Shown piece by piece: positions 2-41,167 of a stretch of DNA of 64,000 nucleotides. The stretch is taken from sequence record MN871447.1. One strand, given 5' to 3'. A program made the position numbers and the translations under genes. How positions within the stretch are numbered: position 1 is the stretch's first letter; each line of letters opens with the position of its first letter. The notes below the pieces were generated by a model, which had not been told where the DNA came from, did not search any database, and saw only the letters and a program-made list of their open reading frames with translations.

Positions 2-481
2 AAGACGTTTGAGGCGTTTTCCTGATGAAGTTACAATAGTGAACATACCGTCATCAGCAGTGCTCGTATCATTGGCGTCGTAATAGAATTCCCCGCCGCC
101 TACAGTGCCATTTAAGTTATAGCTGATCAACTTTAAGATCTGTTTATCGAACCACGGATTGAAATTCTTTAAATCAGTAATCGACGGAAAACTGACTGTA
201 ATTAATTGTGCTGGTAATGCATTAACGGGGAAACTTCCGTTTTCTGTGCTCACTACTGCGGTAGTCCCTGAAGCTACCATTCCCGTTACTGAACCCATTA
301 CACCTGTAACGTTGTAAATCTCTTTAGTCACGGGGTCAACCGCAAACGAAAGGTTTGTTAAATCCACGCCCCGTTCAATTGACCCAATGGTCGATTGCGG
401 GATGTTCAATAATTGAGAAAGAACCTCTGCACTAGACTGTATAGAGGTGTTTCCGGTTGGTTGAATAAAATTAGTTTGCAT
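2..481 (-). CDS. Tailspike/RBP, N-terminal part (runs off the window start; missing from the ORF track)
   Basis: Hand translation from ATG at 481 is open to the window edge: MQTNFIQPTGNTSIQSSAEVLSQLLNIPQS...GVDL...GGGEFYYDANDTSTADDGMFTIVTSSGKRLKRL. An AAGGA RBS lies upstream. The N-terminus resembles the recalled Kuttervirus TSP3/Det7 head (MISQFNQPRGSTSI...), and the GGGEF..DDG module is shared with neighbouring spikes. Confidence 0.8.
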   Translation of the reverse strand, partial: MQTNFIQPTGNTSIQSSAEVLSQLLNIPQSTIGSIERGVDLTNLSFAVDPVTKEIYNVTGVMGSVTGMVASGTTAVVSTENGSFPVNALPAQLITVSFPSITDLKNFNPWFDKQILKLISYNLNGTVGGGEFYYDANDTSTADDGMFTIVTSSGKRLKRL

Positions 482-494
482 TTATTTTTCCTTT

Positions 495-520
495 TAAGGA
501 GGGGAACCCCCTCCTCCTTT
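495..520. terminator. Rho-independent terminator-like hairpin
   Basis: Purine/pyrimidine inverted repeat (aaggagggg...ccctcctcc) directly after the stop of the 520..3276 gene. Confidence 0.5.
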
Positions 521-3276
521 TACTCTGTCTCAAAACGGAATAGTGACAATCTGGATATGTTTACCGTACCTGTAATGTCAGAAAAAGTCGCTGCAACACG
601 AGCGAACGCTGCGCCAACAGGTGCTCTTATTTTCACCGGACTAGAAGCGATGAATCGTGTTGTACCGGCGGAGTAATTTGGTAAGGTAGTGTCGGAAAAT
701 ACACTTCCCATCGCGGTATTGTTACCAACTACTTGGCCGCCAGATAATAATACTTTTTGATCATTGTAAAAATAAACGTATGGGGTAATACGGTTATTCC
801 CCGTCGAGTTCAGTAGCTGCATTGCGGCAACAACCCCGAACATATCTCCTGCTTTACAGGCAAAATATTCTGTTCCAACTAAAGTCACGTTACTCGCAGA
901 ACTTGTACCGGTTAAAGCAAGAACTTTACCTGTAACATCTGTTCTGTCGGCAATTACCCCTGTCATACCCGCGATGTATCCAACAGAAAATTTCGCTAAC
1001 GTAGAGGAAGTACTCGTGACAGTTGTCCCAGTAGTTTCCGCACTGAAATCAAAACCGCTATTAATAATAGCGTTCGCGGACGGGACGTTATAGTAGGGAT
1101 CTTTTACATACCCACTAACCGCCACGGGTTTACCGGAAGAGTGTAAATAGAGATCTTCGGTGTATGGTTTGACTTCGTGTTTGATCTCAGAGCCATTCCA
1201 ATACACTGCAACCTGGTTTCCGTTAAAGAGTGGTCGAGATGGGCTGTTGGCCAGTCCTAAGGTAGAGTCTGATTTCTGACCAGAACGCAGACGAGGAAGG
1301 AAATCGCAATTGGTAAAGTATACCGCACAGTTAGACGGCGAGCCAACTACATCTAATACGTACCCATTCCAAGCTTCGGCATGACAGTCAGTAAACTTAA
1401 CTGCATTATAACCAGACGATCCCGTAATGACTAATATACTACCGTTAGTAAAGTCAAAACTGCAGTTCATGAACGAAACATCAAAACCAGGTGCTGCAAG
1501 GTATACGTGATGTTCGTTGGTACCGCCAAATGTACAGTTAGTAAACGACATACGTTCGCCGGAGTTACTGGACGTTGTAGACGGAACATTCAAACTAATA
1601 CCGTTTTGTTCGAAACGACATTTAGTCGCAGAGAATAGATAAGTATCGATGGAAGAGAACGTCAATGCACGATAGCATTCGGTCACAACGACATTACGGA
1701 ATGAAACGTTTCTGGCGTTGGACATACTAGCTGCTTCGTTACCGATAAATATTCCAGAAAGAGTAGTTATAGCACGGCCTTGTCCATCCAGTCGCAATAC
1801 ACCGCCATCAGCCGAAAGGTTCTCACCTTCCCAAAGATTGACATTCGTTAAGGCGTCAGTATTTTGGAACTTGATCAGGTACGACCCTGTAAAGTTAGAC
1901 GATGCAACAATGTTAACATTACCTTTCGCAACGATACTGATTGATGTCGGTGCGACAATTGTTGCAGATATCAGATAGCTCCCTGCTGAAATACTGATCG
2001 AAGGACGACTGTAAAAATTAGTCCCTATTGTTAATTTCTGGACATACGCGATCGCACGTTGTAAAGGTATCGTGATATCTGTCCCTGGTTGCGCACCCCA
2101 AAATGAAACATTAATTTCTGAATTGGGGATAACACGCTCCCAATAGAAATTCCCACCGACAATGATTGTACCATAGTCTTCTGTTACACCTCCGCCGATG
2201 TGACCAATAAATTCCCCGCCGCCAATTTTAGTACCAACTGCGTAAGATTTTACTTTAATACGTTCCCCTTCAAATCCCGGTTGACGAGACCGCAGTGAAT
2301 CCACTGATTCCACGCCGTAAACACCTTGAACGACTTGCTCTAAGCTCACACCATAACTGGTATTGACTTTTGCCGCACCTGTCGTTTGCCCCAGCGTCAA
2401 AAGAATTTCTGCCGGTGTTCCCGATACCTGTGCGGTGATGACCGACCGAGAACCACCCAGTAAGACTTCAACGATGTCGTTAGCATTCAGCGCTTTCGAA
2501 AGGTTAATCTTCAATCCGGTGCTATCAACTTCATAGTGCTTATTCAGGACTTGTTTTGAGCCGTTGATGTAAATAACAGGGACTGTTTTGAATGTCCACG
2601 GAGGGGTAAGTGACGTTTCTCCACCCACTGCTGCGCCGTCGTTATATAGCCACGTTACGTTGACGTAGTCGGTAATACCAGGTTCTACTGGCGTGATAGG
2701 CGAACCCGGGTAAGGTCTTACGTAGAAGACAACGAAAGCACCCGCCGTTAATGGCCCTTTTAATTTGACTTTGTTCGATAACCGATCAAACGTGTAGTTC
2801 AACCCCTTGAACTGATGACCACCGTTCAAGAACATCTCTGAGACATCGAAACAGTCGAAGGGCAATGCGATTTCCGTTTCACCACCGTTAGCAGAACCGT
2901 TGTTATAAAGGTAACTGACATATGACGTGTAGGAGCCGAACTTACCGTCCGCCATCATTTTTCCGGTGCCGTAGATAACCGGAGTATTGTCTTTATAGAC
3001 AGCCGTGGCAGAAGCACCGTTGACGTTAATAAACGCTGCGACGTAGAGTTGGCTATCGTCAGTATAGACGTAAAAGATTTCATCTTTGATAGTAGCCGCA
3101 ATACCTTCTGCGAGGGTTTCGTAAGCATTTTCAAAAAGAAGATTTGATCGAAGATTATTTAACGTGGTGCGGTATGTTTCATTTTCTGCTCCCGCTACTG
3201 CCACTGGCAATAGAGCAGATTCTGGAACAATACCCTTACTCGAAAGTTCGGAAATTTTTCTTGTGTTATTGGCCAT
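520..3276 (-). CDS. Tailspike/depolymerase: KISEL anchor + two XD3-like docking domains + beta-helix + C-terminal CBM-like domain
   Basis: Start moved to MANNTRKISEL (ATG 3276, GAGG RBS). Two YNxGxAxGGET...NG..Q repeats, then a GVES..LR..GGGEF module, an N/T/S/C-rich beta-helix and a jelly-roll-like C-terminus. Confidence 0.85.
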   Translation of the reverse strand: MANNTRKISELSSKGIVPESALLPVAVAGAENETYRTTLNNLRSNLLFENAYETLAEGIAATIKDEIFYVYTDDSQLYVAAFINVNGASATAVYKDNTPVIYGTGKMMADGKFGSYTSYVSYLYNNGSANGGETEIALPFDCFDVSEMFLNGGHQFKGLNYTFDRLSNKVKLKGPLTAGAFVVFYVRPYPGSPITPVEPGITDYVNVTWLYNDGAAVGGETSLTPPWTFKTVPVIYINGSKQVLNKHYEVDSTGLKINLSKALNANDIVEVLLGGSRSVITAQVSGTPAEILLTLGQTTGAAKVNTSYGVSLEQVVQGVYGVESVDSLRSRQPGFEGERIKVKSYAVGTKIGGGEFIGHIGGGVTEDYGTIIVGGNFYWERVIPNSEINVSFWGAQPGTDITIPLQRAIAYVQKLTIGTNFYSRPSISISAGSYLISATIVAPTSISIVAKGNVNIVASSNFTGSYLIKFQNTDALTNVNLWEGENLSADGGVLRLDGQGRAITTLSGIFIGNEAASMSNARNVSFRNVVVTECYRALTFSSIDTYLFSATKCRFEQNGISLNVPSTTSSNSGERMSFTNCTFGGTNEHHVYLAAPGFDVSFMNCSFDFTNGSILVITGSSGYNAVKFTDCHAEAWNGYVLDVVGSPSNCAVYFTNCDFLPRLRSGQKSDSTLGLANSPSRPLFNGNQVAVYWNGSEIKHEVKPYTEDLYLHSSGKPVAVSGYVKDPYYNVPSANAIINSGFDFSAETTGTTVTSTSSTLAKFSVGYIAGMTGVIADRTDVTGKVLALTGTSSASNVTLVGTEYFACKAGDMFGVVAAMQLLNSTGNNRITPYVYFYNDQKVLLSGGQVVGNNTAMGSVFSDTTLPNYSAGTTRFIASSPVKIRAPVGAAFARVAATFSDITGTVNISRLSLFRFETE

Positions 3277-3314
3277 TGCAAGAAACCTCATTGTCGGCAA
3301 TAGGGCTGTAAAAA

Positions 3315-3362
3315 TAGTCATAGGAAAACAAATAGAGAGGGGCCAAAAGGCCCCTCTCTAGA
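3315..3362 (-). promoter_or_regulatory. Terminator hairpin + TATG late-promoter cassette
   Basis: Minus strand: hairpin GAGAGGGGCC-TTTT-GGCCCCTCTC followed by TTTGTTTTCCTATGACTA. TATG is the phiKZ-type late promoter core. Confidence 0.65.
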
Positions 3363-3369
3363 GTTTATT

Positions 3370-5337
3370 TTATTGAAGGAATGCTTTGACAGGGCCCAAG
3401 TAAACGGAACCTGATGTTTGATAATGACGAAGACCCACGTGAACAGTCGCTGCCCCAGGCGGAACAATTACCGATCCGGAGCATTTTACAACATTAGATG
3501 CACTACCTGTCGTCCCTGAAAGATTCGTCCCAATTACGTTATGGGTAATTTCTACACCTTCAATGTCGTAAAATGTATAACCGAAATAACAACCGCCATT
3601 TGTGGAAACAATATTTTCCCAATAAAGCGTGGTAGCTAAATAAAGAGTTTGTCCTGGCGAGCAGCGTAAACGTTGGCCAAATAACGTCGTCAATGCCCCG
3701 GTCGTTGTTGTGCTAAGCACTTTCGCAGAGGCACCAATTGATTTTGAGTTATCGTAAGTTATCGTAGGTTGGAAAGCGGTACCCGTTGCTGAATATATCG
3801 TAGACCAACCTGTCAAATCTGCGGTATTATAATTATAATTTCTCAGCGGGTTCGTATAATCGCCGATATTTACCATGTCATTATTCCCGTAGATATCAAA
3901 ATAATTATCGACAACTTTGACGAGGGCACCGCTACCTGTACATTTAACAACATCAACGGCCGCCATCTTATTGTATTTTCCAGCAGGACATCCCACTAGT
4001 CGGAAAATACAAGGACCTGATAAAGTGAACCATACAGGTTTACCTGCGGTTGTTCCTTGGTTCGCATACGTGGTGGCAACGTCATTTCCGCCGTCAATAA
4101 ACGTGTTTTGGATATTGACAAACGGTTTTCTTTTTGAAGAGGTATAAAGCATCTTACCGTACGGGTTAGAGGAATTGTTCTCGAAATGACACCCTATGAA
4201 ATTAATATTTCCCGTAGAGATATCAAACACAAGATCACTATAGTCAAAAGAGTGCGAATAAAAATACGCATCAAGATACTGACCGGTACTGGGAACGTAT
4301 ACGCCCGCAGCGTTCCCGTTAGCGTTTAATCCATTATACGTTACGCCACCGAAGATTGAAATGTTTTCCCCTGCGTCGTTGACGCAATTGAAATGCCAGC
4401 CATATCGCCAGAACTTACCCACAACCGGCTGTATAAATTGCAGAAGGTACGTCGACTGCGAGCCGATATAAATGTTGTCACGAAATCCTTCCACCCACAC
4501 TTTAGCTAACACCGTGGACACTTGGGTGTTTGTACCATCGGGGAAGAACCCAATACCATCTAATGTCCCTACAGGTGTTATAGGTGGTTTCGAAACGGAA
4601 GGTCCTCCGTAAGGGCCTTGTAAACGAATTTCCAGCTCTGATCCTAAATTGTAAGTGGCGCCAGGGACACCTACGACCCGAACAGCATACCCGGTAGTCA
4701 TTAATGAACTATCTACCACAAACCTTGAACGGTCCATGATCAATTTTCCGGAAGCTGCGTAGACGGTAATTTGAGAAGTGATTCGGTAACGAGCATTCGA
4801 TTCTTTAGAACGAACAGTATAACCTAACTTCAGTAATTCTAAGGTTTTTTGTACTGCAACAGTATCATCCGTTATACCGTCTCCCTTCGCCCCATTGCTT
4901 TCAAAGGTCGTTTGGCCAGAAATGTCATTCAGGGAACCAGCACCCATGGGAATAATGCTCATACCGGTACTTTCTGTAACTGATGCTGCAGCTCTCATTT
5001 GTCTGCTCGTCGGTAACCTGACTTGTTCATTGTCATAACCCAGAATAGGGTTAGCTACTCCGTCATTATTTTGGTATTGCAGTACCCAGAGTTTCGCCGC
5101 GCTTTCATAGACGAAAAATACGTCCCCTGACGTGGTTCCGTTCAGGCCCGCATCCACAGACAGGAAAGCATTATCGAAGCCTAGCGTTTGACGGAGGTCG
5201 TTAATTTTAGTGGATTTAGTGAAAGGAACTCCCGCACTGGTTTTGGCGTTAATCGGGACAACGTCATTTTCTTTGATGACGCCTGCGTCACCGAGTTCAG
5301 AAATTTTGATTCCGATAGAATCTGAAGACTTAGGCAT
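3370..5337 (-). CDS. Tailspike/depolymerase (KISEL anchor, beta-helix, CBM-like C-terminus)
   Basis: Start moved to MPKSSDSIGIKISELG (ATG 5337, GAGG RBS). Contains the GAKGDGITDDT pectate-lyase-like motif, and its body is paralogous to 8916..10961. Confidence 0.85.
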   Translation of the reverse strand: MPKSSDSIGIKISELGDAGVIKENDVVPINAKTSAGVPFTKSTKINDLRQTLGFDNAFLSVDAGLNGTTSGDVFFVYESAAKLWVLQYQNNDGVANPILGYDNEQVRLPTSRQMRAAASVTESTGMSIIPMGAGSLNDISGQTTFESNGAKGDGITDDTVAVQKTLELLKLGYTVRSKESNARYRITSQITVYAASGKLIMDRSRFVVDSSLMTTGYAVRVVGVPGATYNLGSELEIRLQGPYGGPSVSKPPITPVGTLDGIGFFPDGTNTQVSTVLAKVWVEGFRDNIYIGSQSTYLLQFIQPVVGKFWRYGWHFNCVNDAGENISIFGGVTYNGLNANGNAAGVYVPSTGQYLDAYFYSHSFDYSDLVFDISTGNINFIGCHFENNSSNPYGKMLYTSSKRKPFVNIQNTFIDGGNDVATTYANQGTTAGKPVWFTLSGPCIFRLVGCPAGKYNKMAAVDVVKCTGSGALVKVVDNYFDIYGNNDMVNIGDYTNPLRNYNYNTADLTGWSTIYSATGTAFQPTITYDNSKSIGASAKVLSTTTTGALTTLFGQRLRCSPGQTLYLATTLYWENIVSTNGGCYFGYTFYDIEGVEITHNVIGTNLSGTTGSASNVVKCSGSVIVPPGAATVHVGLRHYQTSGSVYLGPVKAFLQ

Positions 5338-5407: not shown

Positions 5408-8400
5408 TTACCATGTACTCAAAGCCACTCGTCTCCATACATTAGGCGCAACACAAACATAGTAGTAACTAGTATCGGCTGCCCATTGACCAACAGAACC
5501 AGCTGCTGTCATCGATGCTGGAACATCAACTTTTACACCGACAGGGTTACCGTTAATTGTAATCGCACCTGTAAAATAAGCGTTACGAAAACCGGCAGTA
5601 GAAGAACCAAAATCAAACGATCCTGTTACACTGGGAAGAATCGTGTTATAAGCAGTGACGATCCCAGTAGCTGCCACTTTAAAAATATCAGTTAAAGTAT
5701 CAGATACCGATAATGTAGTTTTGTTCGAAGCCGAAACACTAAATGAATTCCCAGAACCAATTGCTAATTTAGAAGGGGAACCGTTCTTTTTCAAGAAACC
5801 CAAATCGCCATTGTTACTGAAAGAAAACATCGAATTATCGGCTGTCATCGATAAAGACCCGCCAATCGAAAGACTTTCGAATGGGTAAAACGTGTAACTT
5901 GGGAGTAGTCTTTGATCGATAACAAGGTTATCATTAACGTTCCCTACAATACCATCGATCGCGTAGGTAGTGCTATACGTACCGTCGTTATTGAGTAAAC
6001 GTCTAACTAGTCGTTGTTGACCTGTTACGGAAGTGGAAGAGCCCGAAGAAATATAAAGTGGGATACCCATAACGACAAGTTTAACAGATGCATCAGGTAC
6101 TTTGATCAGTGTCTGATTGTTATCAACATCGATAGATGTAATTTGTACGGTAAACGTTGTCTTCAAAACAGAATCTAACGTTATACCGCTCTTAATGATT
6201 TTATCATACGCGCTATAGTTAGAGTCAATAGTTGGAGAAAACTTAAAATCATTACCGTGTTTATCTACGCGAATGAAAGGACGGACGATATCACCAGGTT
6301 TAAAAATACCACCACCTGTTCCGTTGTTTACCCCCGAGTAAGTATTTGAGGACATTATCGAGAACATATCGGCTTGCGGGGTATAGTCACAACCGCCAGG
6401 GAAAACACTTACGCCACCGGTATAAGCCTCTACCGCCTTCAAGATGATTGGCGTAGCCGGATCAATCTGGAAATAAACGGAAACCTGCGGTGTCCAAGTA
6501 CCAACTCCATCGGTACCGTATGGGCGTTTGTTAAAAACGGTAATTAGTTTATAACCGTTTTTAAAATCGACTACCGTTTCGCCATAGGCTACGAAATCAT
6601 TGTTATTCGTAACGGTTGTTTCAATATTACCCGTTAGACCAATAGAGATTTTTTTCGGATCGAAGTTACCGGTAAGATCCTTAAGCCAGATATGAACTAC
6701 ACTATCTTTCGCTAAGTTTTTGAACGGTAGATAACAGACACCGCTGTTCAAAGAAAGTCCGTAAGGGTTGAGAAATTCTTTTGATTGCTTGATGTCTCGT
6801 AAGGTGTCAAAATCTAATTCCCCGAGAACACCTCCGACGTTATACGTCCCGTATTTGAAGTCGTAACCACCATGGAGAAAAGCCCCTTCGTCACGGACAG
6901 GCGTACCGATCTGAATACCTCTTACACCAACCGCAGTGGGTACTTGGGTATAGTCATTTGGCCAAACCCATTTTTGGGTAACGCTGTCGTAATAGCCGAA
7001 TGATCCATCTTCAAATGACAACATGTAATAGTTTTTGCTATCATTTTTATACTGTGAAACAGCACCAATGTGAAGGTAGCAGCTTCGGCTCCATACACCG
7101 TCGTTATATCCAAATTTAGAAATAACGAAATTACGATAAGTCCACTCTGTATAAAGGCCAGTAAAGCTATGTCCCTTTGCAGTGGTATAGACAATCCCTT
7201 TCGAAGGGTTACAGTCTACGCCTAACCCGCCGTTATTGGATATATAAGCGCCACTCGCATCAAATCCGGTCCCAGTTACCACCATTGTGTAAGAAGGGAT
7301 AGTACCGGATTTATTTGAGCTTGGGTTTTGCCAATGGATGTTACTTGTACAAATCCCGCCCTTCCAATATGACCAATCGACGCTACTTCTTAATACGCCA
7401 CGCCAACCAGAATGGAAACGACAGTTTTCATAGTTAGCCCCGTAGAAATTACCGAAACGAGAAGTCCCCATGAAATCAAGAATGTAACGATAGTCTTTGA
7501 CGTTGTCATCAAAGTCAGTGCCGTCATTGAAAAGGCTCTGCGTCGTTGTACCTGCCATCGCTACCGCACACCAGGTGAACATCGAAATGGCTACGCCGTC
7601 ATGGAAAACATATTCTGGGTTAATGATTAAAATACCAACTCCCGAAGAACATTGATCCGGAGTTTTACTGACATTCAAATCACCGCGTATATCGCCGCCC
7701 AAGAAAGTGACATTTTGGCAACTCACGCTACCCCAATAATTCGCCCCATTAATAGCATCGAATTTTTCTTTTACTTCATCGTAACCATGTTGGAAGCCAT
7801 TAAGCTTTTTACCAGTGACGGGATAACTATTAGACGGGGTAGGAACAACATAGATTGTTGACCCTCGCATGTCATAAGTCACACCGTTCCTTACTTTTAC
7901 CGCGTTTTTACAAATACGATAAAGATTTGGAGAAAACGTTATTCGTAATCTTTTATATCCAGTATAAGTGGCGGCGGTATTGGAGGTGTAAACTTCTATT
8001 GGGATTTGCTTGAAAATCCCGTTAATGGCATCGCCGAGACATACAACGTTTTCTTTTGTTGACCACACTTCGTCGTAGGTAGTAGCCATCGCGCCATTCG
8101 CTAAAGGGTCAATTTCTCCTTTAGAGATATCAATGAGATATTCTACCCCGAGTTTGTTATAGATCTTCCCCTCGGTAATAACGTGTTTTCCTGCCAATGA
8201 AAGATTGACAACGCCTGTCTTGTTCCAATCACCAGCACCGCCATCTTTTTCTTTATAAAATCCACGAGTGCTAATTTTATTAGGCGAAACAGTCATGTTG
8301 AATATATCTACTGTCGCCGAGAGCCAATGGCCCAAACCGTCAGCTATTGTCTCACCTGTACCCATCGCTATCAGCGAGGTCCCTTGCGCGGGATTGATTA

Positions 8401-8755
8401 ACTCATCTTTCCCGGCAAGAATATTTAACCCTTTACGCGTGCGATATAAAAGTGGACTTCCGTCAGCATCATTCATGACTTCTGCAATACCTGACCGGTT
8501 TACATAGGCACGAACTTTCGTTTTGGTGTCATCGGTGTAAACAAAGAAAATCTGATTCGCCGATGTATTACTTAACCCTGCGACAGTACTATCAAAAGCT
8601 GTTTCAAAATTGAGTAAATTGCGTAAATCAGAAATACTCATTGCGGAAGAAGTATTTTCTGTATTGTTTAACTGGGAAATGAACACCACATCTGAGTCAT
8701 TCACTGGCGTACTCGGCCGAGAAAGTTCAGAAAGTTTAACATAAATGTCAGCCAT
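5408..8755 (-). CDS. Large tailspike/fibre (KLSEL anchor, beta-helix, C-terminal fibre motif)
   Basis: 1115 aa. MADIYVKLSELS anchor, beta-helix-like central region and a common phage-fibre C-terminal motif VPAS.TAAG..GQWAAD..YYYVCVA.N.WRRVALSTW. Confidence 0.8.
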   Translation of the reverse strand: MADIYVKLSELSRPSTPVNDSDVVFISQLNNTENTSSAMSISDLRNLLNFETAFDSTVAGLSNTSANQIFFVYTDDTKTKVRAYVNRSGIAEVMNDADGSPLLYRTRKGLNILAGKDELINPAQGTSLIAMGTGETIADGLGHWLSATVDIFNMTVSPNKISTRGFYKEKDGGAGDWNKTGVVNLSLAGKHVITEGKIYNKLGVEYLIDISKGEIDPLANGAMATTYDEVWSTKENVVCLGDAINGIFKQIPIEVYTSNTAATYTGYKRLRITFSPNLYRICKNAVKVRNGVTYDMRGSTIYVVPTPSNSYPVTGKKLNGFQHGYDEVKEKFDAINGANYWGSVSCQNVTFLGGDIRGDLNVSKTPDQCSSGVGILIINPEYVFHDGVAISMFTWCAVAMAGTTTQSLFNDGTDFDDNVKDYRYILDFMGTSRFGNFYGANYENCRFHSGWRGVLRSSVDWSYWKGGICTSNIHWQNPSSNKSGTIPSYTMVVTGTGFDASGAYISNNGGLGVDCNPSKGIVYTTAKGHSFTGLYTEWTYRNFVISKFGYNDGVWSRSCYLHIGAVSQYKNDSKNYYMLSFEDGSFGYYDSVTQKWVWPNDYTQVPTAVGVRGIQIGTPVRDEGAFLHGGYDFKYGTYNVGGVLGELDFDTLRDIKQSKEFLNPYGLSLNSGVCYLPFKNLAKDSVVHIWLKDLTGNFDPKKISIGLTGNIETTVTNNNDFVAYGETVVDFKNGYKLITVFNKRPYGTDGVGTWTPQVSVYFQIDPATPIILKAVEAYTGGVSVFPGGCDYTPQADMFSIMSSNTYSGVNNGTGGGIFKPGDIVRPFIRVDKHGNDFKFSPTIDSNYSAYDKIIKSGITLDSVLKTTFTVQITSIDVDNNQTLIKVPDASVKLVVMGIPLYISSGSSTSVTGQQRLVRRLLNNDGTYSTTYAIDGIVGNVNDNLVIDQRLLPSYTFYPFESLSIGGSLSMTADNSMFSFSNNGDLGFLKKNGSPSKLAIGSGNSFSVSASNKTTLSVSDTLTDIFKVAATGIVTAYNTILPSVTGSFDFGSSTAGFRNAYFTGAITINGNPVGVKVDVPASMTAAGSVGQWAADTSYYYVCVAPNVWRRVALSTW

Positions 8756-8915: not shown

Positions 8916-10961
8916 ATGACCGATATCACTGCATTGAAAATTTCTGAACTATCGCCCAGCTCTAATCCGTCAGAGAATGCGTTTCTTCCGCTCTCAGAAG
9001 CGAATGGAAACGAATCCGAAAAAGTTAGTATTGGTACCCTCAGAGAAACGTTAGGTTTTGAGAACGCGTACAGCACGATTGCTGCCGGGCTCAGTGTAAC
9101 TACAGAGGGGAATGTTTTCTTTGTTTACGAAAACAGTACACGAGACTATGTCTTGGGGTATGTAAACCAAGGGAACGGGACTTACTCTGCATTAATGTCA
9201 GACAGTACGACACAAGTTCGCTACGCGACGAAAGCGCATATTGTCAACTCTTTATTCATGTTACAAGGAGTAGAGAGTTTCGACGCATTACGGACGCTTA
9301 AACCATGGTACCAAGGACAGCGTGTCACGCTGAAGAGTTACTACAAAGACGGGGTTACGGGTGGGGGTATTTTCGTTGCGCGTTTAGGGGTAAATGCGGA
9401 TGACAACGGCACGATTGCTGCCGGGAATGAATTCTACTGGCAACGGATTATTACAGATCAGTTGTCTTTTGAGGACTTTGGTGCAGTCGGGGACGGCGTA
9501 CTGGACGATACTAGTAATATTCAAAAAGCGGTCAACTACTGTGCCAAAAATGGCATTGCACTAACGTGTTTAGGGAAAGTATACGCGGTCAGTACCGTAA
9601 ATTTCCCGACCGATTTAGTGATCGATATGCGTAATGCAGTACTTTTGTCGCTGCCCTCTGTTACGACGGGTTATACCTTAACAATCAGCGGCTATTTGTC
9701 ACCTGCGGCTAATCCAGGGAAATTTGATAATATTCGCGTTCAGCGTACCTTAATTAATACTCATCAACCCGACACTAACAGTGTCGTAGACGGCGTGTCA
9801 TTTGGTGTCGATGCGCACAATATTTCCTTCTACAATCTTAAGGTCTCTGGGTTTAGGGACGGAGTTTGTTTTAACGGGAAGAGTGCTTACCTCATTCGTT
9901 TATACAGTCCGATCATCGGACAATGTTGGCGCCGAGGGATGGCCTTTTATGCGAATACTGATTCCAATGAGAACGTGACTATTTACGGCGGCGTGATTGC
10001 AGATTGTTGTAATTTTACTTTCGACGGTACCGGGCTCTACTTATCAGGGAGTGCCTCGAGTATCGATGTCAGGTTCTTTGGAACCAGTTTTGATTATTGC
10101 GACATCTCAGTTGATATTTATCAATCTAACGTCGAGCTCCACGGTTGTCACTTGGAAAACAATAACAACAACCCTCATATTCGACTTTCGTACACCTCAA
10201 CCAAAAACCAACCCTATTTGATCATGAAAGGGGGGACAATGGGAGGCGGACCGAACGCGAACTCATGGAGCGGTATTCCGGTAGAAAATAGTACGGGTCG
10301 CCCTTACCTCGTCTTCATTACCAACACTGGCGGTGCCCACGTCGATATTGATGGAACTGACACCAGTAAATACATGACGGGAGTCAGGAGAACTACCGAG
10401 ATCGTAGGTGTAGAGGGGGATAACTACCAGTTGATCGGGACCTTAAGGGTGAGGAACAAAATGACCTCTGGAAACATGGATAACGCCAGTCGTCCCATGC
10501 GACCTTGTAGTGCCCTTAACGTTATTCTGATCAACCAGTATCAAACTGCCGCATGGACACCGAGTTACACTAACGCCGACCTCACTTATACGATTGATAC
10601 TACGAATTATTCTAACCCTAATTCACCGCACTCACGAAAAATTACACAAGGAAGCGTACGTAACGTCTCTTACTGGCAGGACGTGACACTGCGCGGCGGA
10701 GATATTTTCCACGCGGAGGCCGAAATCAAAATTACCTCGTTGACGGCTGGTTACGTCGCACTTCGAGTGGATTTTTACGACTCTGCCGGGAACGTAATAC
10801 AATCGTCAATCAAATCTGTATCTGCGGTGACAACCGATTGGAATAACGTGTGGGTCTGGTTACGTGCGCCAAACGGTACAGTCAAGGCAAAAGTTCAAGA
10901 GTACTTAAACGGTTTTGTTGGAACGGCATATTTCACCAATGAACACGTTTGGATTTCTTAA
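8916..10961 (+). CDS. Tailspike/depolymerase (KISEL anchor, GGG-F/DDNG module, beta-helix, CBM-like C-terminus)
   Basis: Start moved to MTDITALKISEL (ATG 8916, GGAG RBS). Contains FGAVGDGVLDDT, a beta-helix and a C-terminal YWQDVTL...FYDSAG...LRAPNGTVKAKV module. Confidence 0.85.
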   Translation: MTDITALKISELSPSSNPSENAFLPLSEANGNESEKVSIGTLRETLGFENAYSTIAAGLSVTTEGNVFFVYENSTRDYVLGYVNQGNGTYSALMSDSTTQVRYATKAHIVNSLFMLQGVESFDALRTLKPWYQGQRVTLKSYYKDGVTGGGIFVARLGVNADDNGTIAAGNEFYWQRIITDQLSFEDFGAVGDGVLDDTSNIQKAVNYCAKNGIALTCLGKVYAVSTVNFPTDLVIDMRNAVLLSLPSVTTGYTLTISGYLSPAANPGKFDNIRVQRTLINTHQPDTNSVVDGVSFGVDAHNISFYNLKVSGFRDGVCFNGKSAYLIRLYSPIIGQCWRRGMAFYANTDSNENVTIYGGVIADCCNFTFDGTGLYLSGSASSIDVRFFGTSFDYCDISVDIYQSNVELHGCHLENNNNNPHIRLSYTSTKNQPYLIMKGGTMGGGPNANSWSGIPVENSTGRPYLVFITNTGGAHVDIDGTDTSKYMTGVRRTTEIVGVEGDNYQLIGTLRVRNKMTSGNMDNASRPMRPCSALNVILINQYQTAAWTPSYTNADLTYTIDTTNYSNPNSPHSRKITQGSVRNVSYWQDVTLRGGDIFHAEAEIKITSLTAGYVALRVDFYDSAGNVIQSSIKSVSAVTTDWNNVWVWLRAPNGTVKAKVQEYLNGFVGTAYFTNEHVWIS

Positions 10962-13723: not shown

Positions 13724-15718
13724 ATGTCTAATGATACTCAAAAAATTTCGGAATTAGGGAGTGCGGCTAGCGTCCCTGAGAACTCAATGGTCCCTATAGT
13801 GACGGTTCCTACCGAAACAAACCAGATCACTCTTTCTTCGTTGCGCTCGGTATTAAATTTCGAAAGTGCCTTTGACACTATCGAATTAGGATTAGCTGGG
13901 ACAGAAAAGAACGAACCCTTCTTCGTTTACACCGACGATACTCGGTCATTTGTTAACGGGTATCTCAATCAAGGGGGTGGGACCTATACATCGCTTCTCG
14001 ATAAGGACGGTAAGCAGATCAATAACGTTGTTTACAGTAAAATTATTGGGAGTGTTTATCGTGGGTTTGTTAGCGGGCTCTGTCAGAACGCGGGGTTCGG
14101 AAGCGATAATATAGTCGTTTTAAAGAAAGGGTTAGTGCTCTCGGGGATCATGGTAGTCATCGACACTACATCGCTCCGTTTTTATTTCAGCAACAATTCT
14201 GCTCTCACTGTTGACCATTGGGCACAGAGCGGCGACAACCTTGTGGTGACGGATTCCTCAGGGAATAACGTTACACTAGCAGACGGTTGGTCGCAACTAT
14301 TAACGGGCGGTACTCTCCCAGTTGACGTAAGAAGCGAGACTATTGATTTCTGGGAAAGAATTAAAACCAACGGACAATTTGATCTGACAGCTAGACCAAA
14401 CGACCCAAAAGGGATTGCAGGTATTGTTTTTGGCGGTAAGAATAACAAAGGCGCGTTGGTTATTGATCAGAGAGGTCGTCTCCAGACCTATGCGATTAAA
14501 AATGGTGTCATGACGGCGGCCAGAATGGCTATCCCTGTAACGGAGCCTTACGGTTATGGTGCCGGGTCGCGGTTAGGAAGCATCACTCGCTTTCCGGTCA
14601 GCGGCGCGGAAGACGATACTCTCTCTTCGTCTATTATTTTTCTACCCCAAGCAGATGGTTCAGTGAAAGCCTATTTAGCAGGTCCCGGGCTGTATACAAA
14701 CTTTGCTGCGCCTTTTCCCGATGCCGTAAAACGCGTAGCTAAAGAGATTGTTACAGCCGACCTTTTACCAAGTGCTTTATTGAATTCTTCTACTAACCCA
14801 ACCGATTGGCTCAGCACGGAGTCTTGGGTTAAATTGGTGACGGTCAATGACAATATTCAAGGCTCGGTATTCAGCGGTATTTATTCTGGGGGTGCGGGTT
14901 TATCGGAAGCTGTATGCGCTTACTTGATTGAATTCCAATCGAAACCCTCGAATGTGACTACCGTCAACGCAAACACACTGCGTTACTACCTTAGAATTAC
15001 GTCACTTCGTTCTCGAGGAGATCTGCGTTACAGTTCAGGAACGGTACGTTTTGGAGTGGTGCGAGATGCGACGGCCAACACTTCAACGCTTTATGCGCGC
15101 TTAGCGGTTCGTTCTGAGAACTCTTCCCTTATTCCCTTACGTGCTGACCCGCCTGGTTCCGATGGCGTCGCGAAAGTAACCATCAATACTGTATTAAACA
15201 GCTATGTTACGACTGAGCCCTCCGGGATCGTGTACCTCCCCGTTACGGAGTCGCTGACTACCAACGTCGCTGTTCAGCTCAACAATGGGACGTATGCTCA
15301 GACACGCGGAGCAGTGATTCGATTAACGAATAATCTTTCAGCCAACACTCGCGGGTCATTCGTCACCTCGGGAGAGTTCTCCGCTAACGATACTTTATCT
15401 GCTATCAACCGTGGCTACGCTGGACTAGGAACAGTGACAGCTGCTCGAGTATCGACAGGGAAATATACGATCACAGGGGCCTCCACAGGGACTTCTTCGG
15501 TGGCCTGGAAAATCACACCTCCATTTGGGTCCTTTGGCTCGGGTATTCAAAACCTGGTAGCGGTAATCGAATCGGACGTTTCCAATGTCATTACTATCGG
15601 CGTGAGAAAAATTCTTTACACCGCTGATACTACCACCGGTGCGGTCACGACAGCGTTGGGAGATTATGTAGATATCCCGAATGATACCTGGATCGATATC
15701 CACACTACGCTCAGTTGA
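13724..15718 (+). CDS. Tail fibre protein (KISEL anchor, non-beta-helix body, fibre C-terminal domain)
   Basis: MSNDTQKISEL anchor. The C-terminus RVSTGKYTITG...W.ITPP...DIPNDTWIDIH is typical of a phage tail-fibre tip domain. Confidence 0.75.
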   Translation: MSNDTQKISELGSAASVPENSMVPIVTVPTETNQITLSSLRSVLNFESAFDTIELGLAGTEKNEPFFVYTDDTRSFVNGYLNQGGGTYTSLLDKDGKQINNVVYSKIIGSVYRGFVSGLCQNAGFGSDNIVVLKKGLVLSGIMVVIDTTSLRFYFSNNSALTVDHWAQSGDNLVVTDSSGNNVTLADGWSQLLTGGTLPVDVRSETIDFWERIKTNGQFDLTARPNDPKGIAGIVFGGKNNKGALVIDQRGRLQTYAIKNGVMTAARMAIPVTEPYGYGAGSRLGSITRFPVSGAEDDTLSSSIIFLPQADGSVKAYLAGPGLYTNFAAPFPDAVKRVAKEIVTADLLPSALLNSSTNPTDWLSTESWVKLVTVNDNIQGSVFSGIYSGGAGLSEAVCAYLIEFQSKPSNVTTVNANTLRYYLRITSLRSRGDLRYSSGTVRFGVVRDATANTSTLYARLAVRSENSSLIPLRADPPGSDGVAKVTINTVLNSYVTTEPSGIVYLPVTESLTTNVAVQLNNGTYAQTRGAVIRLTNNLSANTRGSFVTSGEFSANDTLSAINRGYAGLGTVTAARVSTGKYTITGASTGTSSVAWKITPPFGSFGSGIQNLVAVIESDVSNVITIGVRKILYTADTTTGAVTTALGDYVDIPNDTWIDIHTTLS

Positions 15719-15729
15719 TTGAGGTAAAA

Positions 15730-17391
15730 ATGAACTACTATTACATTGATTCGTCCGCTACAGTTAATGGGACCGGGACGAAAAGCAATCCCTTTAATTC
15801 GATTCAGTCAGCGATTGACGCCAACCTAGTCCACCCGCTAACGCTATACCTTAAAGCAGGGCAAACTTACGAACTGGCATATTACAACCGTACCGCAACC
15901 AGTTTCTTTAATAATAAGACTGGTATACAGTCTGTTATTACTAGATACGGTGCGGGCGCCAAACCAATACTCACCAGTAATAACGATACGATTATCATTG
16001 ATGCGTACGCGTGCCAAATAAAGTTTGAAGACATTCGTATTTCCCCGAAACCTGGATCAGAAAGAACCGCCATTTACCTTAACCTGATTCCAATCGGCGA
16101 TAGTGCCAATAACAATATTTGTAACTTAACCTTAAACAAAGTTGACTTTATTGGTACACCTGAGTCGTTAGGGGGGATGAACGGAATCAATCGGGTGTTC
16201 TGTTTGAACAGTTTGGTCGATTATGCCGGGCTTAATAACATTGCCCATAAACTCTTAATCAGTAACTGTACGTTCGACAACGTGAATGCCGGTGTACAAT
16301 TGAGAGGTAACCCAGATCTCTCGGACAAAACGACTTATCACGGTGACCAGAAGAAAAGTTATGGTTTTAGGGTGATCAACTGTTCGTTTACGAACATCAT
16401 TAACTCGGCGGTGTTCATTGGTTGGGCAGCGAGTAAAAATCAATCGCGGAATGTCATTGGCGACGACATGGCGACGGGTGTGGACGGACTGTACTATTCC
16501 AGTTACCGTTACAACGTGTACAATACCGCAACAGGTGCGTCTCAAGCCGATGTCCCGGTTTGGTTCTCTGGAACACGTTATCTGACATTACAGAATTTCG
16601 AAATCCACGGCGCCGGCCCGGCTTACCCTGACCGTCAAACTATTGACTTCGATTATCATTGTCACTATTGCGTGGCGCGTTATGGATATACTTCAAACAA
16701 CGCCCGCGGTTCAATGATTATCCAAGGACCTTTCAGTAACAGCTGGTACAGTTCTAAAGGGTACACGCCATTGTCCAATGATGCGTATACTTTGTACTAT
16801 ACGCTTGGTTTTGGGTCGATCGGTAACGTCATCGAATATGTGATTTCATTTAACGATGGAGTAGCGAGAACCACCAATACAGCAGATAAATTTTGGCAAA
16901 AAACCTCTGCGTTTCGCTACGTCTATGATAATGTTGTACGGAACTGTGTGTTCATTGATACGGTCACTACAAGTAACGATAATGCGATAGCTATAAACCC
17001 GCAGGCCGATGACAATGCAACGGCACTCAGTTTGACGCTTGATAGCAACATTTTTTATTACACCAATAAAACAGCTACGGAACTTGTGGTAGGTAGTACG
17101 GTGTCCGGTTTCCCAGGGTTATTAGGTAAATTTAAACTCAAAAATAATGTCTTCTATTCTGAAAAATGGAATGGTGTACAACCCACTTCCACAGGATTTC
17201 TGGAAGAAAGTAATCTATTCAGCAACCCAGCGTTCATCAATGGTTTGTCTAATAGCGCTTTCAGCGGATTAAAAGAAGCTTTACTCAATATTAAAGTCAA
17301 AATGAATAGTCCTTGTATCGGTAACGGTACAACGGGAGTTTCGCCGGATTTTGATGGTAAAATTGGTAATAATATCGGAATCGTCCAGTAA
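15730..17391 (+). CDS. Anchor-less right-handed beta-helix protein (putative polysaccharide lyase/depolymerase)
   Basis: ATG 15730 after a GAGGT RBS. YYIDSSA..NGTGTKSNPFNSIQ.AI...LYLKAGQTY is a pectin-lyase-fold start, and NxFxNP.F lies near the C-terminus. Confidence 0.75.
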   Translation: MNYYYIDSSATVNGTGTKSNPFNSIQSAIDANLVHPLTLYLKAGQTYELAYYNRTATSFFNNKTGIQSVITRYGAGAKPILTSNNDTIIIDAYACQIKFEDIRISPKPGSERTAIYLNLIPIGDSANNNICNLTLNKVDFIGTPESLGGMNGINRVFCLNSLVDYAGLNNIAHKLLISNCTFDNVNAGVQLRGNPDLSDKTTYHGDQKKSYGFRVINCSFTNIINSAVFIGWAASKNQSRNVIGDDMATGVDGLYYSSYRYNVYNTATGASQADVPVWFSGTRYLTLQNFEIHGAGPAYPDRQTIDFDYHCHYCVARYGYTSNNARGSMIIQGPFSNSWYSSKGYTPLSNDAYTLYYTLGFGSIGNVIEYVISFNDGVARTTNTADKFWQKTSAFRYVYDNVVRNCVFIDTVTTSNDNAIAINPQADDNATALSLTLDSNIFYYTNKTATELVVGSTVSGFPGLLGKFKLKNNVFYSEKWNGVQPTSTGFLEESNLFSNPAFINGLSNSAFSGLKEALLNIKVKMNSPCIGNGTTGVSPDFDGKIGNNIGIVQ

Positions 17392-38980: not shown

Positions 38981-41125
38981 ATGGCGACATTAGATACAGT
39001 AACTGACGATAGCTGGACGCGTCAGGCATTCTTACTTCCTGCCGATGCGGTTGATGATGACGACATTTATTACCGTAACCACTCCAGCGCCTATTTTAAA
39101 TACACCGATACTACGTTGGGCGGAAACTGGGCATTGAATGCACCACCCCAACCCTGTCTCTTTTCAGACCCTGTCTTAGACCGTTATGTTGAAATCGGCG
39201 AGGGCCAAGGTGCGTGGTATTCTGAAAACATTGATGACAACTCAGTTTTACTCCACATGCGATTTGGTGTACCGAACTATAACAGTCTGGCGAGTTTCTT
39301 CGGTAACTTCTACAGCTCCGACGATGCGCGTTTGGTTCGTACTGGACGGGCATCCGGTGTAGGGAATTTAATTGGCCGGGCGATCGGCTGGGCGTTCTCT
39401 GTTCGACTTGTTCCGTTTATCATGACGTTCACCGCCATCAAATGGTTTACCGGAACGGTCAGTACGAAATTCTATTACCTTAAACCGACGATGGGGCTGT
39501 ACTGGAAATATGTCAACGATTTTGCCAACAACATTGCCTCCAACCTTGATCTCGCAGCAAAGCCTACTACGGATTCATGGCTTAAACTTACAGAAGGTGC
39601 GAATTTAAACGGTACCACACCGATGTCTGAATCTGGTGACCCTGGTGTGGAGTCTATCGAACAAGCAACAAAAACAGCGTTTGAGATTGGCGCCAGAGAG
39701 AAGTCGGTTTATGACCAGATGGTACCGGAACTTTTCCGTGCTGACGGTTTAACTGGTATCGATATCTACGCGACAGCGACACGGGCGCAGGCATACGCTA
39801 ACGCGTGGCATGAGGCAATTAATGAAATTGCCGCACAAAACCAGAGTAACGGTAATGGCGTGATGTCAAGTATCTACGCGTGGATGACTGGCGGAGGTGC
39901 AACGGCATCACTGAACAAGGCCAAAAAGAAAACTTACGCGACCACTGAAGAGTTCCTTAACGCTTATCTGAAAGACCCAGACGGACGTCTCACTGAATCA
40001 CCTGCTACGGCGGGGAATGAAGCCAGCAATGCCGAGGTTAACACCGCTCAGCAATCCACGGCGACAACGACCGATGCCAACGGTAATGCGATTAGTCCCG
40101 TGGCTGATAACGGAACTAATGAAGCGCAGAAAGGTGTTATTGAACAAGCGTACGAAAGCGTCAAAGACTATTTCACTGATGAGGTCATTGGTCGTGCTTA
40201 TGCGACCTTTAAAGCGGCGCAGCGCGATGGTTCTCAATGGCTAACCCTTCGAATCGATGGACGTGAGTCGGCCAGTGAATCTTTCTCAAACAGTGTACGC
40301 GAGTCCGATCTCCAGTCGACGATCAACAGCACTTCTTCCAGAGCGGCCAGTATGCGTTTCAGTATGGCAGAAGGGAATTTCCTTGGTATTCCAGGGATGC
40401 AAGAGATCGTTAACACAGTGAAAGACATAGCGGGCGGGATTATGGATTCTCTTCATATCTCGGGTGTTGGCGCTATTGCAGGGAACGCCTTTGTCGATAT
40501 TCCTAAACATTACGACAGTTCTTCTGCGAGTTTTAACCAGATGTCGCTAACGATTCCGTTACGAGCATGGGCGGGAGATAACTTCAACCGTTTCCAATGT
40601 GAAATCCTTCCGCTGATCACAATGTTAGTGGGGGCGTTACCAAGGGCAACGGGGACTGGTTCGTATACAGCACCTTTCATTGGTGAGTTTTATTGCCAGG
40701 GTCGTTGTTCGATTCCTTTGGGGATGATCACGGCCATCGATATTACTCGTGCAACCTCGAATATGCCTTGGACGAAAAACGGGGAATACCTCGGGATTGA
40801 TGTCAGGTTAACGATCACTGACCTTTCGTCAGTGGCGGCCATGAACCTTAACGAGGCATTTGGTCTACGTAACTTTGACCCAACGACATGGAACCGGCTG
40901 CTGTTCCCGCAAGATTCGTCGTTTGAAATGTACACTAACGTATTATCCAGTCTGGGTCTCCATGACCAGATTTACATGTTACCGCGCTTCAAGCGTAACT
41001 GGAACAGGGTAGTGAACAGTTTCGATAGATTCTTCTCGTACTCTAACCTGGCCAACACTATCTTCAGCGGTAATATGGGCGGGCAAATACTTTCTGCGCT
41101 CAGTAAAACTGACCGTGGCTTGTAA
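38981..41125 (+). CDS. Tail/baseplate structural protein (phiKZ gp182-like)
   Basis: KYTDTTLGGNWALNAPPQ, MRFGVPNYNSLASFF and YTAPFIGEFYCQGR motifs; syntenic after the TMP. Confidence 0.7.
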   Translation: MATLDTVTDDSWTRQAFLLPADAVDDDDIYYRNHSSAYFKYTDTTLGGNWALNAPPQPCLFSDPVLDRYVEIGEGQGAWYSENIDDNSVLLHMRFGVPNYNSLASFFGNFYSSDDARLVRTGRASGVGNLIGRAIGWAFSVRLVPFIMTFTAIKWFTGTVSTKFYYLKPTMGLYWKYVNDFANNIASNLDLAAKPTTDSWLKLTEGANLNGTTPMSESGDPGVESIEQATKTAFEIGAREKSVYDQMVPELFRADGLTGIDIYATATRAQAYANAWHEAINEIAAQNQSNGNGVMSSIYAWMTGGGATASLNKAKKKTYATTEEFLNAYLKDPDGRLTESPATAGNEASNAEVNTAQQSTATTTDANGNAISPVADNGTNEAQKGVIEQAYESVKDYFTDEVIGRAYATFKAAQRDGSQWLTLRIDGRESASESFSNSVRESDLQSTINSTSSRAASMRFSMAEGNFLGIPGMQEIVNTVKDIAGGIMDSLHISGVGAIAGNAFVDIPKHYDSSSASFNQMSLTIPLRAWAGDNFNRFQCEILPLITMLVGALPRATGTGSYTAPFIGEFYCQGRCSIPLGMITAIDITRATSNMPWTKNGEYLGIDVRLTITDLSSVAAMNLNEAFGLRNFDPTTWNRLLFPQDSSFEMYTNVLSSLGLHDQIYMLPRFKRNWNRVVNSFDRFFSYSNLANTIFSGNMGGQILSALSKTDRGL

Positions 41126-41167
41126 AAGTAAACAAAAAAAAAAGAGAGGGTTTTCACCCTCTCTTTT

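Follow-up and report, generated by a model that had tools for sequence, protein, structure and literature searches.

A cluster of tailspike genes lies at the start of, and directly upstream of, a 64,000-nucleotide window (the whole stretch of DNA analysed), which corresponds to bases 124001-188000 of MN871447.1, its first 9 kb being 100% identical to bases 124001-133000. We propose, and consider likely, that this phage mounts its spikes in two tiers: spikes bearing an N-terminal anchor attach independently, while the XD branching domains of two anchor-bearing hub spikes would recruit three anchorless spikes through a shared N-terminal motif. The record is titled 'Serratia phage KpLz_1_41', names Klebsiella pneumoniae as host, is 305 kb long and is marked UNVERIFIED, without annotation. 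The window is related in DNA to a dozen further Klebsiella phages of ~300 kb, vB_KpM_FBKp24 (phiKp24, Maaswegvirus) and KpLz-2_45 (Siatvirus) being among them; the source is a Klebsiella jumbo myophage of roughly 300 kb belonging to the phiKp24 (Maaswegvirus/Siatvirus) group. The 20 kb of the record upstream of the window (L001) was analysed with it, and the remainder of the record was taken in overlapping pieces for a census of attachment modules. In order of transcription, one arm of the cluster encodes an 1115-amino acid (aa) spike and a 655-aa spike (both with an anchor), hub 1 (anchor and two XDs), a 721-aa spike (D1 head), a 661-aa spike, hub 2 (anchor and one XD), a 607-aa spike (D1 head) and a 575-aa beta-helix protein. 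Four further spike genes of the cluster lie on the opposite strand. Features within the window are given in Table 1. Comparison of the spike clusters revealed an identical gene order in phiKp24, MJ359, Centimanus, KpLz-2_45 and LPKP23.

Hub 1 carries two T4 gp10-like XD domains of the XD2/XD3 type. It is the orthologue of phiKp24 gp306, with 92.9% identity to the gp306 N-terminus over its first 99 aa, and its start was placed at position 3276 rather than 3321 because this agrees with the annotated start of gp306. The protein consists of an anchor (residues 1-100), XD a (106-187), XD b (194-274) and a neck motif at about residue 323, the XDs thus lying between the N-terminal anchor and the neck and enzymatic body. 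A preliminary description of this DNA had placed two tandem domains between anchor and catalytic body, at about 2455-2920, and likened them to XD3 of CBA120 TSP4. Both points hold. The two repeats it quoted, VSYLYNNGSANGGETEIAL... and VTWLYNDGAAVGGETSLTP..., both fall inside the open reading frame (ORF) 520..3321(-), and the hidden Markov model (HMM) envelopes of the two domains lie close to the positions it gave. In a phmmer search of all PDB chains, hub residues 109-279 align to residues 130-300 of a 1086-aa 'Tail fiber protein' (chain 9d80_D, E 6e-28), residues 99-278 to 100-282 of 'Gp49' from Shigella phage B2 (9d83_D, E 1.4e-27), and residues 99-187 to 245-332 of CBA120 TSP4-N (7rej/7rfo, E 3e-11). 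The TSP4-N stretch is XD3, since the XD2-XD3 linker occupies residues 250-264 (PMC8825819). Shorter stretches of the hub match both XDs of CBA120 TSP2 (6w4q), XD a and XD b match each other (E about 1e-7), and PHROG tail families match the same residues.

Structure prediction points the same way. An AlphaFold2 (AF2) model of hub residues 1-320 is confident in the two XDs only (predicted local distance difference test score, pLDDT, 63-88), where the predicted fold is a beta-jellyroll of about 70-80 residues. In Foldseek the modelled XDs match TSP4-N (7rej_A, 2.9e-9) and 9d84_B (root-mean-square deviation 0.9 Å over 68 columns, TMt 0.94, 38% identity; which of the two XDs is aligned is not stated in the output). 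The latter is a 69-residue XD of gp49, the one ordered in its complex with gp48 (phage B2). As a control, the XD HMMs also recover the XDs of Det7 gp206/gp208 and of K11 gp17. The label 'Ackermannviridae-type' given earlier to the hub is imprecise, as the best whole-pair matches are to Schitoviridae hubs of the G7C gp66 and B2 gp49 kind, and Autographiviridae and Vibrio phages have the module too. Hub 1 was likewise considered as an orthologue of TSP4 and rejected: AD, XD1 and D1-D2 were not found in it, and the TSP4-N alignment covers residues 245-332 only.

Beyond the XDs, hub 1 is a depolymerase. Residues 323-410 match residues 268-357 of CBA120 TSP2 (6w4q) and residues 320-391 match WceF (6tgf) in the phmmer search of the PDB, while Pfam Beta_helix scores 25.2 bits on residues 510-657, just below its curated cutoff of 25.9. 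Positions 2312..3360 of the window have 87.7% DNA identity to phiKp24, and the similarity ends at 2312, about residue 321. Relatives of hub 1 are 93-98% identical over residues 1-320, with total lengths of 824-952 aa. Because DNA similarity to phiKp24 stops near residue 321, and near-identical N-termini sit on proteins of such different length, the specificity bodies appear to be exchanged by recombination at the neck, the attachment modules staying fixed.

By phmmer and HMM, seven spikes of the cluster begin with the N-terminal anchor of hub 1, as do nine ORFs of the whole genome in a six-frame census. By tblastn, this anchor (PHROG 27731) occurs only in 23 records, at 2-7 places each, all of them 273-307-kb phages of Klebsiella, Serratia or Pectobacterium. 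The term 'jumbo-phage anchor' used in the preliminary description is therefore apt, and no similarity between this domain and the AD of TSP4 could be detected. Pfam-A yielded no attachment-domain match in any spike, only weak beta-helix and pectate-lyase matches; the set searched did not include PF27114, the family listed for database relatives. Two of the anchor-bearing ORFs lie far from the cluster, at MN871447.1 30269..30913 (-, 215 aa) and 38989..41244 (+, 752 aa). The former is little more than an anchor and is possibly a bodiless or truncated spike.

The gene following hub 1 encodes the 721-aa spike (L001 18316..20481; record 122316..124481), of which the window holds the first 160 codons. 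It was absent from the ORF lists because the ORF runs off the start of the window; the MQTNFIQPTGNTSI...GVDL stretch quoted for it opens the ORF starting at 481(-). As had been noted from the sequence, this protein lacks the KISEL anchor, no anchor match being found in it, against seven other spikes of the cluster with one. Its N-terminus is a divergent D1 head of the TSP1/TSP3/gp63.1 family, visible to profile and fold comparison only. The 721-aa and 607-aa heads are paralogous (28% identity, E 3e-7). In tblastn, the 607-aa head matches spike N-termini in Taipeivirus, Kuttervirus (Det7 gp207), Miltonvirus and Alcyoneusvirus (K64-1/RaK2), with further matches to N-termini in Gamaleyavirus, Efbeekayvirus, Stephanstirmvirinae and phiMAM1. 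The record of Enterococcus phage Efm 3-10 (111 kb) also matches weakly (25.5% over 88 aa, the same as Kuttervirus records), which suggests that it is mislabelled or mixed.

Since a word-indexed protein search brought up no more than 7 relatives for one head and 3 for the other, diverse heads were collected from phage records. Fourteen of them align end to end (profile A1). The match of A1 to CBA120 TSP3 and TSP1, G7C gp63.1 and B2 gp48 (1e-27 to 1e-21) was set aside as circular, A1 including Det7 gp207. When six jumbo type-1 heads (A2) were instead compared with ten non-jumbo heads (A3) in hhalign, the two profiles aligned over columns 1-87 with 97.1% probability (E 4.8e-11). Further, a head HMM built from the six jumbo relatives only finds Det7 gp207, which occupies the TSP3 position (1.9e-14), Det7 gp209 (2.6e-10) and Taipeivirus heads (1e-21); with the same HMM set, XDs and heads are recovered in Det7, in K11 and in a Taipeivirus. 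The AF2 model of the 160 window-encoded residues (pLDDT 78.5; 71-91 over residues 21-90) has a helix at 11-25, six strands within 32-88 and then the neck, and D1 has been described as one helix plus six strands (PMC10253068). Foldseek matches the model to CBA120 TSP2, TSP1, TSP4dN and TSP3, G7C gp63.1 and B2 gp48 (E 1.5e-7 to 2e-3). The alignment of type-1 heads is invariant at 20 of columns 1-28 and at 26 of the 82 columns that follow. The preliminary description had called this head TSP3-like: membership of the D1 family is borne out by the profile comparisons, but the likeness to TSP3 in particular is not, since a single D1 was detected, without a D2, and the neck motif follows from about residue 99. 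TSPs generally have D1-D2 heads, TSP2 having a single D1 (PMC8825819).

Upstream of the window, hub 2 carries the anchor and one XD; a second XD was sought in it and not found, and no D1 was found in either hub. The D1 head of the 607-aa spike bears out the earlier expectation of further TSP3-type heads beyond the window start. The 661-aa spike starts with MLTDFNKPRGSNGEY (MLTDFNKPRGS), and its first 15 aa are nearly unchanged in six relatives with differing bodies. This peptide resembles the first residues of D1 heads, and 8 of its first 13 residues are identical in K11 RBP2 (MLNDLNQPRGS), a single comparator assessed without statistics. The 'conserved peptide' of the KP32 type has been shown by experiment to dock on a branching domain (PMC13352976). 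In the six-frame census, the 305-kb record contains exactly three XDs and nine anchors. The pattern M-x(2,3)-[FL]-x-[QK]-P-x-G-[SNT] likewise occurs in exactly three ORFs, all of them anchorless spikes next to hubs. Across six genomes XD count, partner count and gene order co-vary. Six relatives retain the succession of hub 1 with two XDs, head spike, peptide spike, hub 2 with one XD and head spike, and the order of hub followed by partner is also found in Det7 and K11.

We therefore propose the following scheme. In the first tier, the nine anchor ORFs would each attach singly, probably to the baseplate or a fibre scaffold. In the second, hub 1 with two XDs and hub 2 with one, both bearing an anchor, would recruit the anchorless spikes, each trimeric XD giving an off-axis docking face for the N-terminus of one such spike, by analogy with CBA120 TSP4/TSP2, G7C gp66 and B2 gp48-gp49. 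In CBA120, XD3 of TSP4 binds the TSP1 head, and TSP1 and TSP3 bind through their heads (PMC8825819); the gp48-gp49 tailspike complex of Shigella phage B2 is represented by entry 9D84, from the Moo19/B2 study of G7C-like Schitoviridae (PMC11654681); and in KP32 the branching domain engages residues 1-29 of RBP2, where Leu2, Asp3, Phe5 and Asn6 make contacts (PMC13352976). The likely partners of hub 1 are the 721-aa spike with its D1 head and then the 661-aa spike, which has only the 15-aa N-terminal peptide of the same motif, while the likely partner of hub 2 is the 607-aa spike that follows it.

Several points weigh against this scheme. The docking of partners on XDs is argued from analogy, counts and synteny, and the motif pattern was derived from the same proteins that it finds, so that only the absence of other matches is informative. 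In relatives of KpLz_1_41 scanning covered the spike cluster, the whole-genome scan being of KpLz_1_41 alone, and in MJ359 the cluster has three XDs against four motif or head spikes. A strict rule of one XD per partner was accordingly rejected as universal. The link of the 721-aa head to TSP3 is remote: tblastn with its first 109 residues finds only thirteen records of the clade, phmmer finds no PDB chain, the narrow profile A2 finds no solved relative in the PDB, and direct searches thus reach neither a solved nor a Kuttervirus relative. The Foldseek TM-score of the head model is only about 0.37, two domains being aligned together. An anchor profile of 14 sequences (alignment A6) likewise has no solved relative in the PDB (best E 0.18), and the AF2 model of hub 1 is unusable over the anchor (pLDDT <45). 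Finally, the published model for phiKp24 has gp306 as the single primary fibre, with the others docked on it (PMC9700779). Single-sequence PDB searches with the 721-aa, 607-aa and hub-2 proteins gave nothing useful. The fourth MJ359 partner is an 803-aa spike (L014 21104..23515) with two tandem head-like domains, at residues 1-97 and 101-180.

That published model, in which only hub 1 would sit on the baseplate and all other fibres would dock in layers on the T4gp10-like domains of hubs 1 and 2, is the strongest alternative, though an unlikely one. It was reached by ranking the fibres by N-terminal length, with gp306 proposed as primary, and branched fibres are visible in the accompanying cryo-electron tomography (cryo-ET) (PMC9700779); hub 1 has the longest structural N-terminus in KpLz_1_41 too. 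Three XDs in the whole genome are nevertheless few for eleven or more other spikes. The anchor is an unlikely ligand for an XD, because both hubs share it with non-hub spikes, and anchors can work without XDs, because Serratia phage Moabite has a spike cluster with eight anchor spikes in which no XD occurs. Characterised XD partners are all of the motif type, binding by a head or peptide (PMC8825819, PMC13352976), and here there are exactly three anchorless spikes of this kind. Taken together, the proposed split between anchor and motif, the 3:3 count and the outgroup comparison argue against gp306 as a single primary fibre.

Less probable still is that the XDs are spacers or carbohydrate-binding modules that recruit nothing, the anchorless spikes attaching elsewhere by their heads or not being virion proteins. 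XD1 of CBA120 TSP4 is thought to be a spacer (PMC8825819), and no attachment module is recognisable in the two beta-helix proteins at the cluster ends (575 and 553 aa), which means that mounting need not be uniform. The domains of hub 1, however, match the docking-type jellyrolls XD2/XD3 and not XD1, the alignment being to TSP4 245-332 only, and one modelled XD can be superposed on the XD of gp49 that is ordered when bound to gp48. The covariation of XDs, partners and gene order among the six genomes also speaks against it, as does the strong constraint under which the partners keep their first 15-28 residues although their bodies change.

As to the origin of the branching tier, the preliminary description had it imported horizontally from another phage family. 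A graft is consistent with the distribution of its parts: the anchor is confined to jumbo phages, and Moabite, which shares it, has eight anchor spikes in a 40-kb spike cluster in which the same HMMs found no XD, head or motif (one outgroup, cluster only). For this reason the data fit an older anchor array to which the Klebsiella clade added the XD/partner tier. A donor, direction or date cannot be named, the identity being about 35-42% and the tier being fixed in the Klebsiella clade. By tblastn, the XD pair occurs in 584 phage records, from Ackermannviridae, Schitoviridae, Przondovirus-type Autographiviridae, and Dickeya and Vibrio phages, the best whole-pair matches being in Schitoviridae (37-39% identity, E down to 2e-28). 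For phiKp24-like jumbo phages a hybrid network, in which an older array of about nine anchor spikes (alone in the Moabite cluster) later received the grafted XDs, heads and peptide as three sites for three anchorless spikes, is tentatively suggested in place of one tree on a single primary fibre, at a little under even chances. Recent import of the hub-plus-partner cassette specifically from an Ackermannviridae (Kuttervirus) phage is very improbable: Kuttervirus and Taipeivirus have many relatives of the XDs and heads, and Det7 has the same hub-then-head gene order, but identity to any non-jumbo phage is only about 25-42%, Schitoviridae match better than Kuttervirus (tblastn 2e-28 in one piece against 9e-9 in two; PDB 1e-27 against 3e-11), hub 1 has none of the AD, XD1 and D1-D2 of TSP4, and the cassette is present and syntenic in 13 of 13 clade records and therefore predates divergence of the clade.

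The closest known system is phiKp24 itself (vB_KpM_FBKp24), whose gp306 and gp301 are orthologous genes in the same order, described with 'hyperbranched tail fibers'. Their T4gp10-like docking domains and the hyperbranched fibre model were published in 2022 (PMC9700779). phiKp24 differs in its catalytic body beyond about residue 321 of the hub and in having a small ORF, gp305, between hub and partner, where KpLz_1_41 has none. Its fibres were grouped by N-terminal length, with no split into anchor and head or peptide and no count of XDs against partners (PMC9700779). The anchor, T4gp10-like domain and conserved-peptide scheme had already been set out for Klebsiella phages, including jumbo phages (PMC6872550). 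RaK2/phiK64-1 (Alcyoneusvirus; PMC10253068) is another Klebsiella jumbo phage with a lineage-specific anchor, CBA120-like XDs and D1 heads, and many depolymerases, and the head N-termini of K64-1 align with those of KpLz_1_41. It has, however, a single primary fibre, gp528, with five XDs out of eight in total, and an anchor reported from one protein only (PMC10253068), whereas KpLz_1_41 has the anchor on nine ORFs and three XDs.

Other counterparts come from smaller phages. The best solved matches to the XD pair, over 171-180 residues, are Shigella B2 gp49-gp48, the 9d80_D chain and G7C gp66-gp63.1 of Schitoviridae (9D83/9D84, 9D80, 4QNL; PMC11654681), which share a two-XD hub with an adjacent head-type spike whose N-terminus is a D1 head. 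These podophages have a single hub and a single partner, the region preceding the XDs bears no relation to the jumbo anchor, and B2 gp49 lacks an enzymatic body, in contrast to the jumbo hub with its own depolymerase activity. TSP1-4 of CBA120 and other Kuttervirus phages (7REJ, 6W4Q, 6NW9, 4OJ5; PMC8825819) share the XD2/XD3-type docking platforms, D1 heads on anchorless spikes and multivalent depolymerases, and Det7 has its partner gene after the hub gene. CBA120 TSP4 is arranged AD-XD1-XD2-XD3-D1-D2, unlike the jumbo hub with its unrelated anchor and no XD1, D1 or D2; TSP2, also a hub, has no anchor and docks XD to XD, whereas both jumbo hubs carry their own anchor; and Kuttervirus TSP3 has D1 and D2 where the 721-aa spike has D1 only, the similarity of the heads being seen only with profiles. 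Finally, Przondovirus KP32/K11 (PMC6872550, PMC13352976) has a hub of anchor, branching domain and enzyme, followed by RBP2 with a short N-terminal peptide only. It has one XD, one partner and a T7-like tail, while the jumbo genome combines partners of the peptide and full-head types.

Table 1. Features of the spike cluster within the window (positions of the window; strand and evidence as recorded)
Feature	Position	Strand	Evidence or remark
Anchorless head-type tailspike (721-aa spike), first 160 codons	2..481	-	PHROG tail fibre/EPS depolymerase families
D1 head, residues 1-95, opens with MQTNFIQPTGNTS	197..481	-	hhalign, HMM, AF2, Foldseek
GC-rich hairpin in 38-nt spacer, hub 1 stop to head-spike start	497..515		No T-run after it on the coding (-) strand
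Hub tailspike 1, 918 aa	520..3276	-	Anchor, two XDs, neck, beta-helix depolymerase body, C-terminal domain
Neck, beta-helix depolymerase body and C-terminal domain, swappable specificity part	520..2454	-	PDB matches, DNA break
XD b, residues 194-274, internal duplicate of XD a	2455..2697	-	HMM envelope, mutual match
XD a, residues 106-187, T4 gp10 XD2/XD3-type	2716..2961	-	HMM envelope, PDB matches, AF2/Foldseek
N-terminal anchor, about 100 aa, contains KISEL	2977..3276	-	phmmer/HMM, tblastn
12-bp terminator-like hairpin, T-rich on both sides, between 655-aa spike gene and hub 1	3333..3360		Terminator annotated at this junction in phiKp24
Anchor-bearing spike, 655 aa, without XD	3370..5337	-	ORF, anchor phmmer/HMM matches
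Anchor-bearing spike, 1115 aa, without XD	5408..8755	-	ORF, PHROG, anchor HMM matches
Anchor-bearing spike, likely start ATG 8916 within a 695-aa TTG ORF	8916..10961	+	ORF, anchor HMM
Anchor-bearing spike, 791 aa	11272..13647	+	ORF, anchor HMM
Anchor-bearing spike, 664 aa, internal D1-like stretch after the anchor	13724..15718	+	Anchor and head HMM

phiKp24 is annotated with a terminator at the same junction as the hairpin upstream of hub 1. A GC-rich hairpin also follows the 721-aa gene (L001 18285..18310). Because this one has a T-run on the coding strand and the hairpin after hub 1 has none, hub 1 and its 721-aa partner may be co-transcribed.

The head HMM from the 14-head profile A1 matches ORF positions 147-209 of the 664-aa spike (E 3.2e-6), which makes this protein a hybrid of both attachment vocabularies, jumbo anchor and D1-like stretch. 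Pfam Phage_tail_C_2 scores 26.7 bits on its residues 570-660, against a cutoff of 27. Each arm of the cluster ends in one of two paralogous beta-helix proteins, of 553 aa (window 15730..17391, +) and 575 aa (L001 9671..11398, -), both starting MNYYYID..., whose genes abut or overlap the preceding spike gene. The helix begins straight after the start, and no anchor, XD, head or motif was found in either. In position and length the 553-aa gene matches phiKp24 gp313 (group G4 in PMC9700779). Two adjacent genes on the minus strand of the upstream region (L001 3893..5962 and 5979..8039) encode ~690-aa proteins with an N-terminal DUF7941 (E about 1e-18); their phiKp24 counterparts, gp294 and gp295, are annotated 'bifunctional tail protein', and DUF7941 is a third type of N-terminus among the putative depolymerases. 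The title of the record is not an isolated case, as MN871447-MN871453 and OR844942.1 include several ~300-kb phages isolated on Klebsiella pneumoniae and deposited as 'Serratia phage Kp...'.

The locus is a known architecture, correctly read in a new, unannotated phage, and its hub part is already published for phiKp24, so that its contribution is chiefly an annotated example for a GenBank record that had no annotation. What goes beyond the published papers is the proposed division into anchor-type and motif-type N-termini, the tally of three XDs against three partners and the comparison with the Moabite outgroup. The gain is modest: a parts list of attachment modules for each spike, a 3:3 count of sites and partners, and an outgroup cluster without the branching tier. 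The outcome is a specific structural hypothesis, which can be tested with existing phiKp24 cryo-ET and cryo-electron microscopy data or with virion cross-linking data. If the hybrid network is correct, a single homologous docking element would underlie both the D1 heads known from Ackermannviridae and Schitoviridae and the 'conserved peptides' of Przondovirus RBP2, and KpLz_1_41 would have it in two forms, at full length and as a remnant of 15 aa. Branched receptor-binding complexes of this kind explain how one phage recognises many Klebsiella capsule types.

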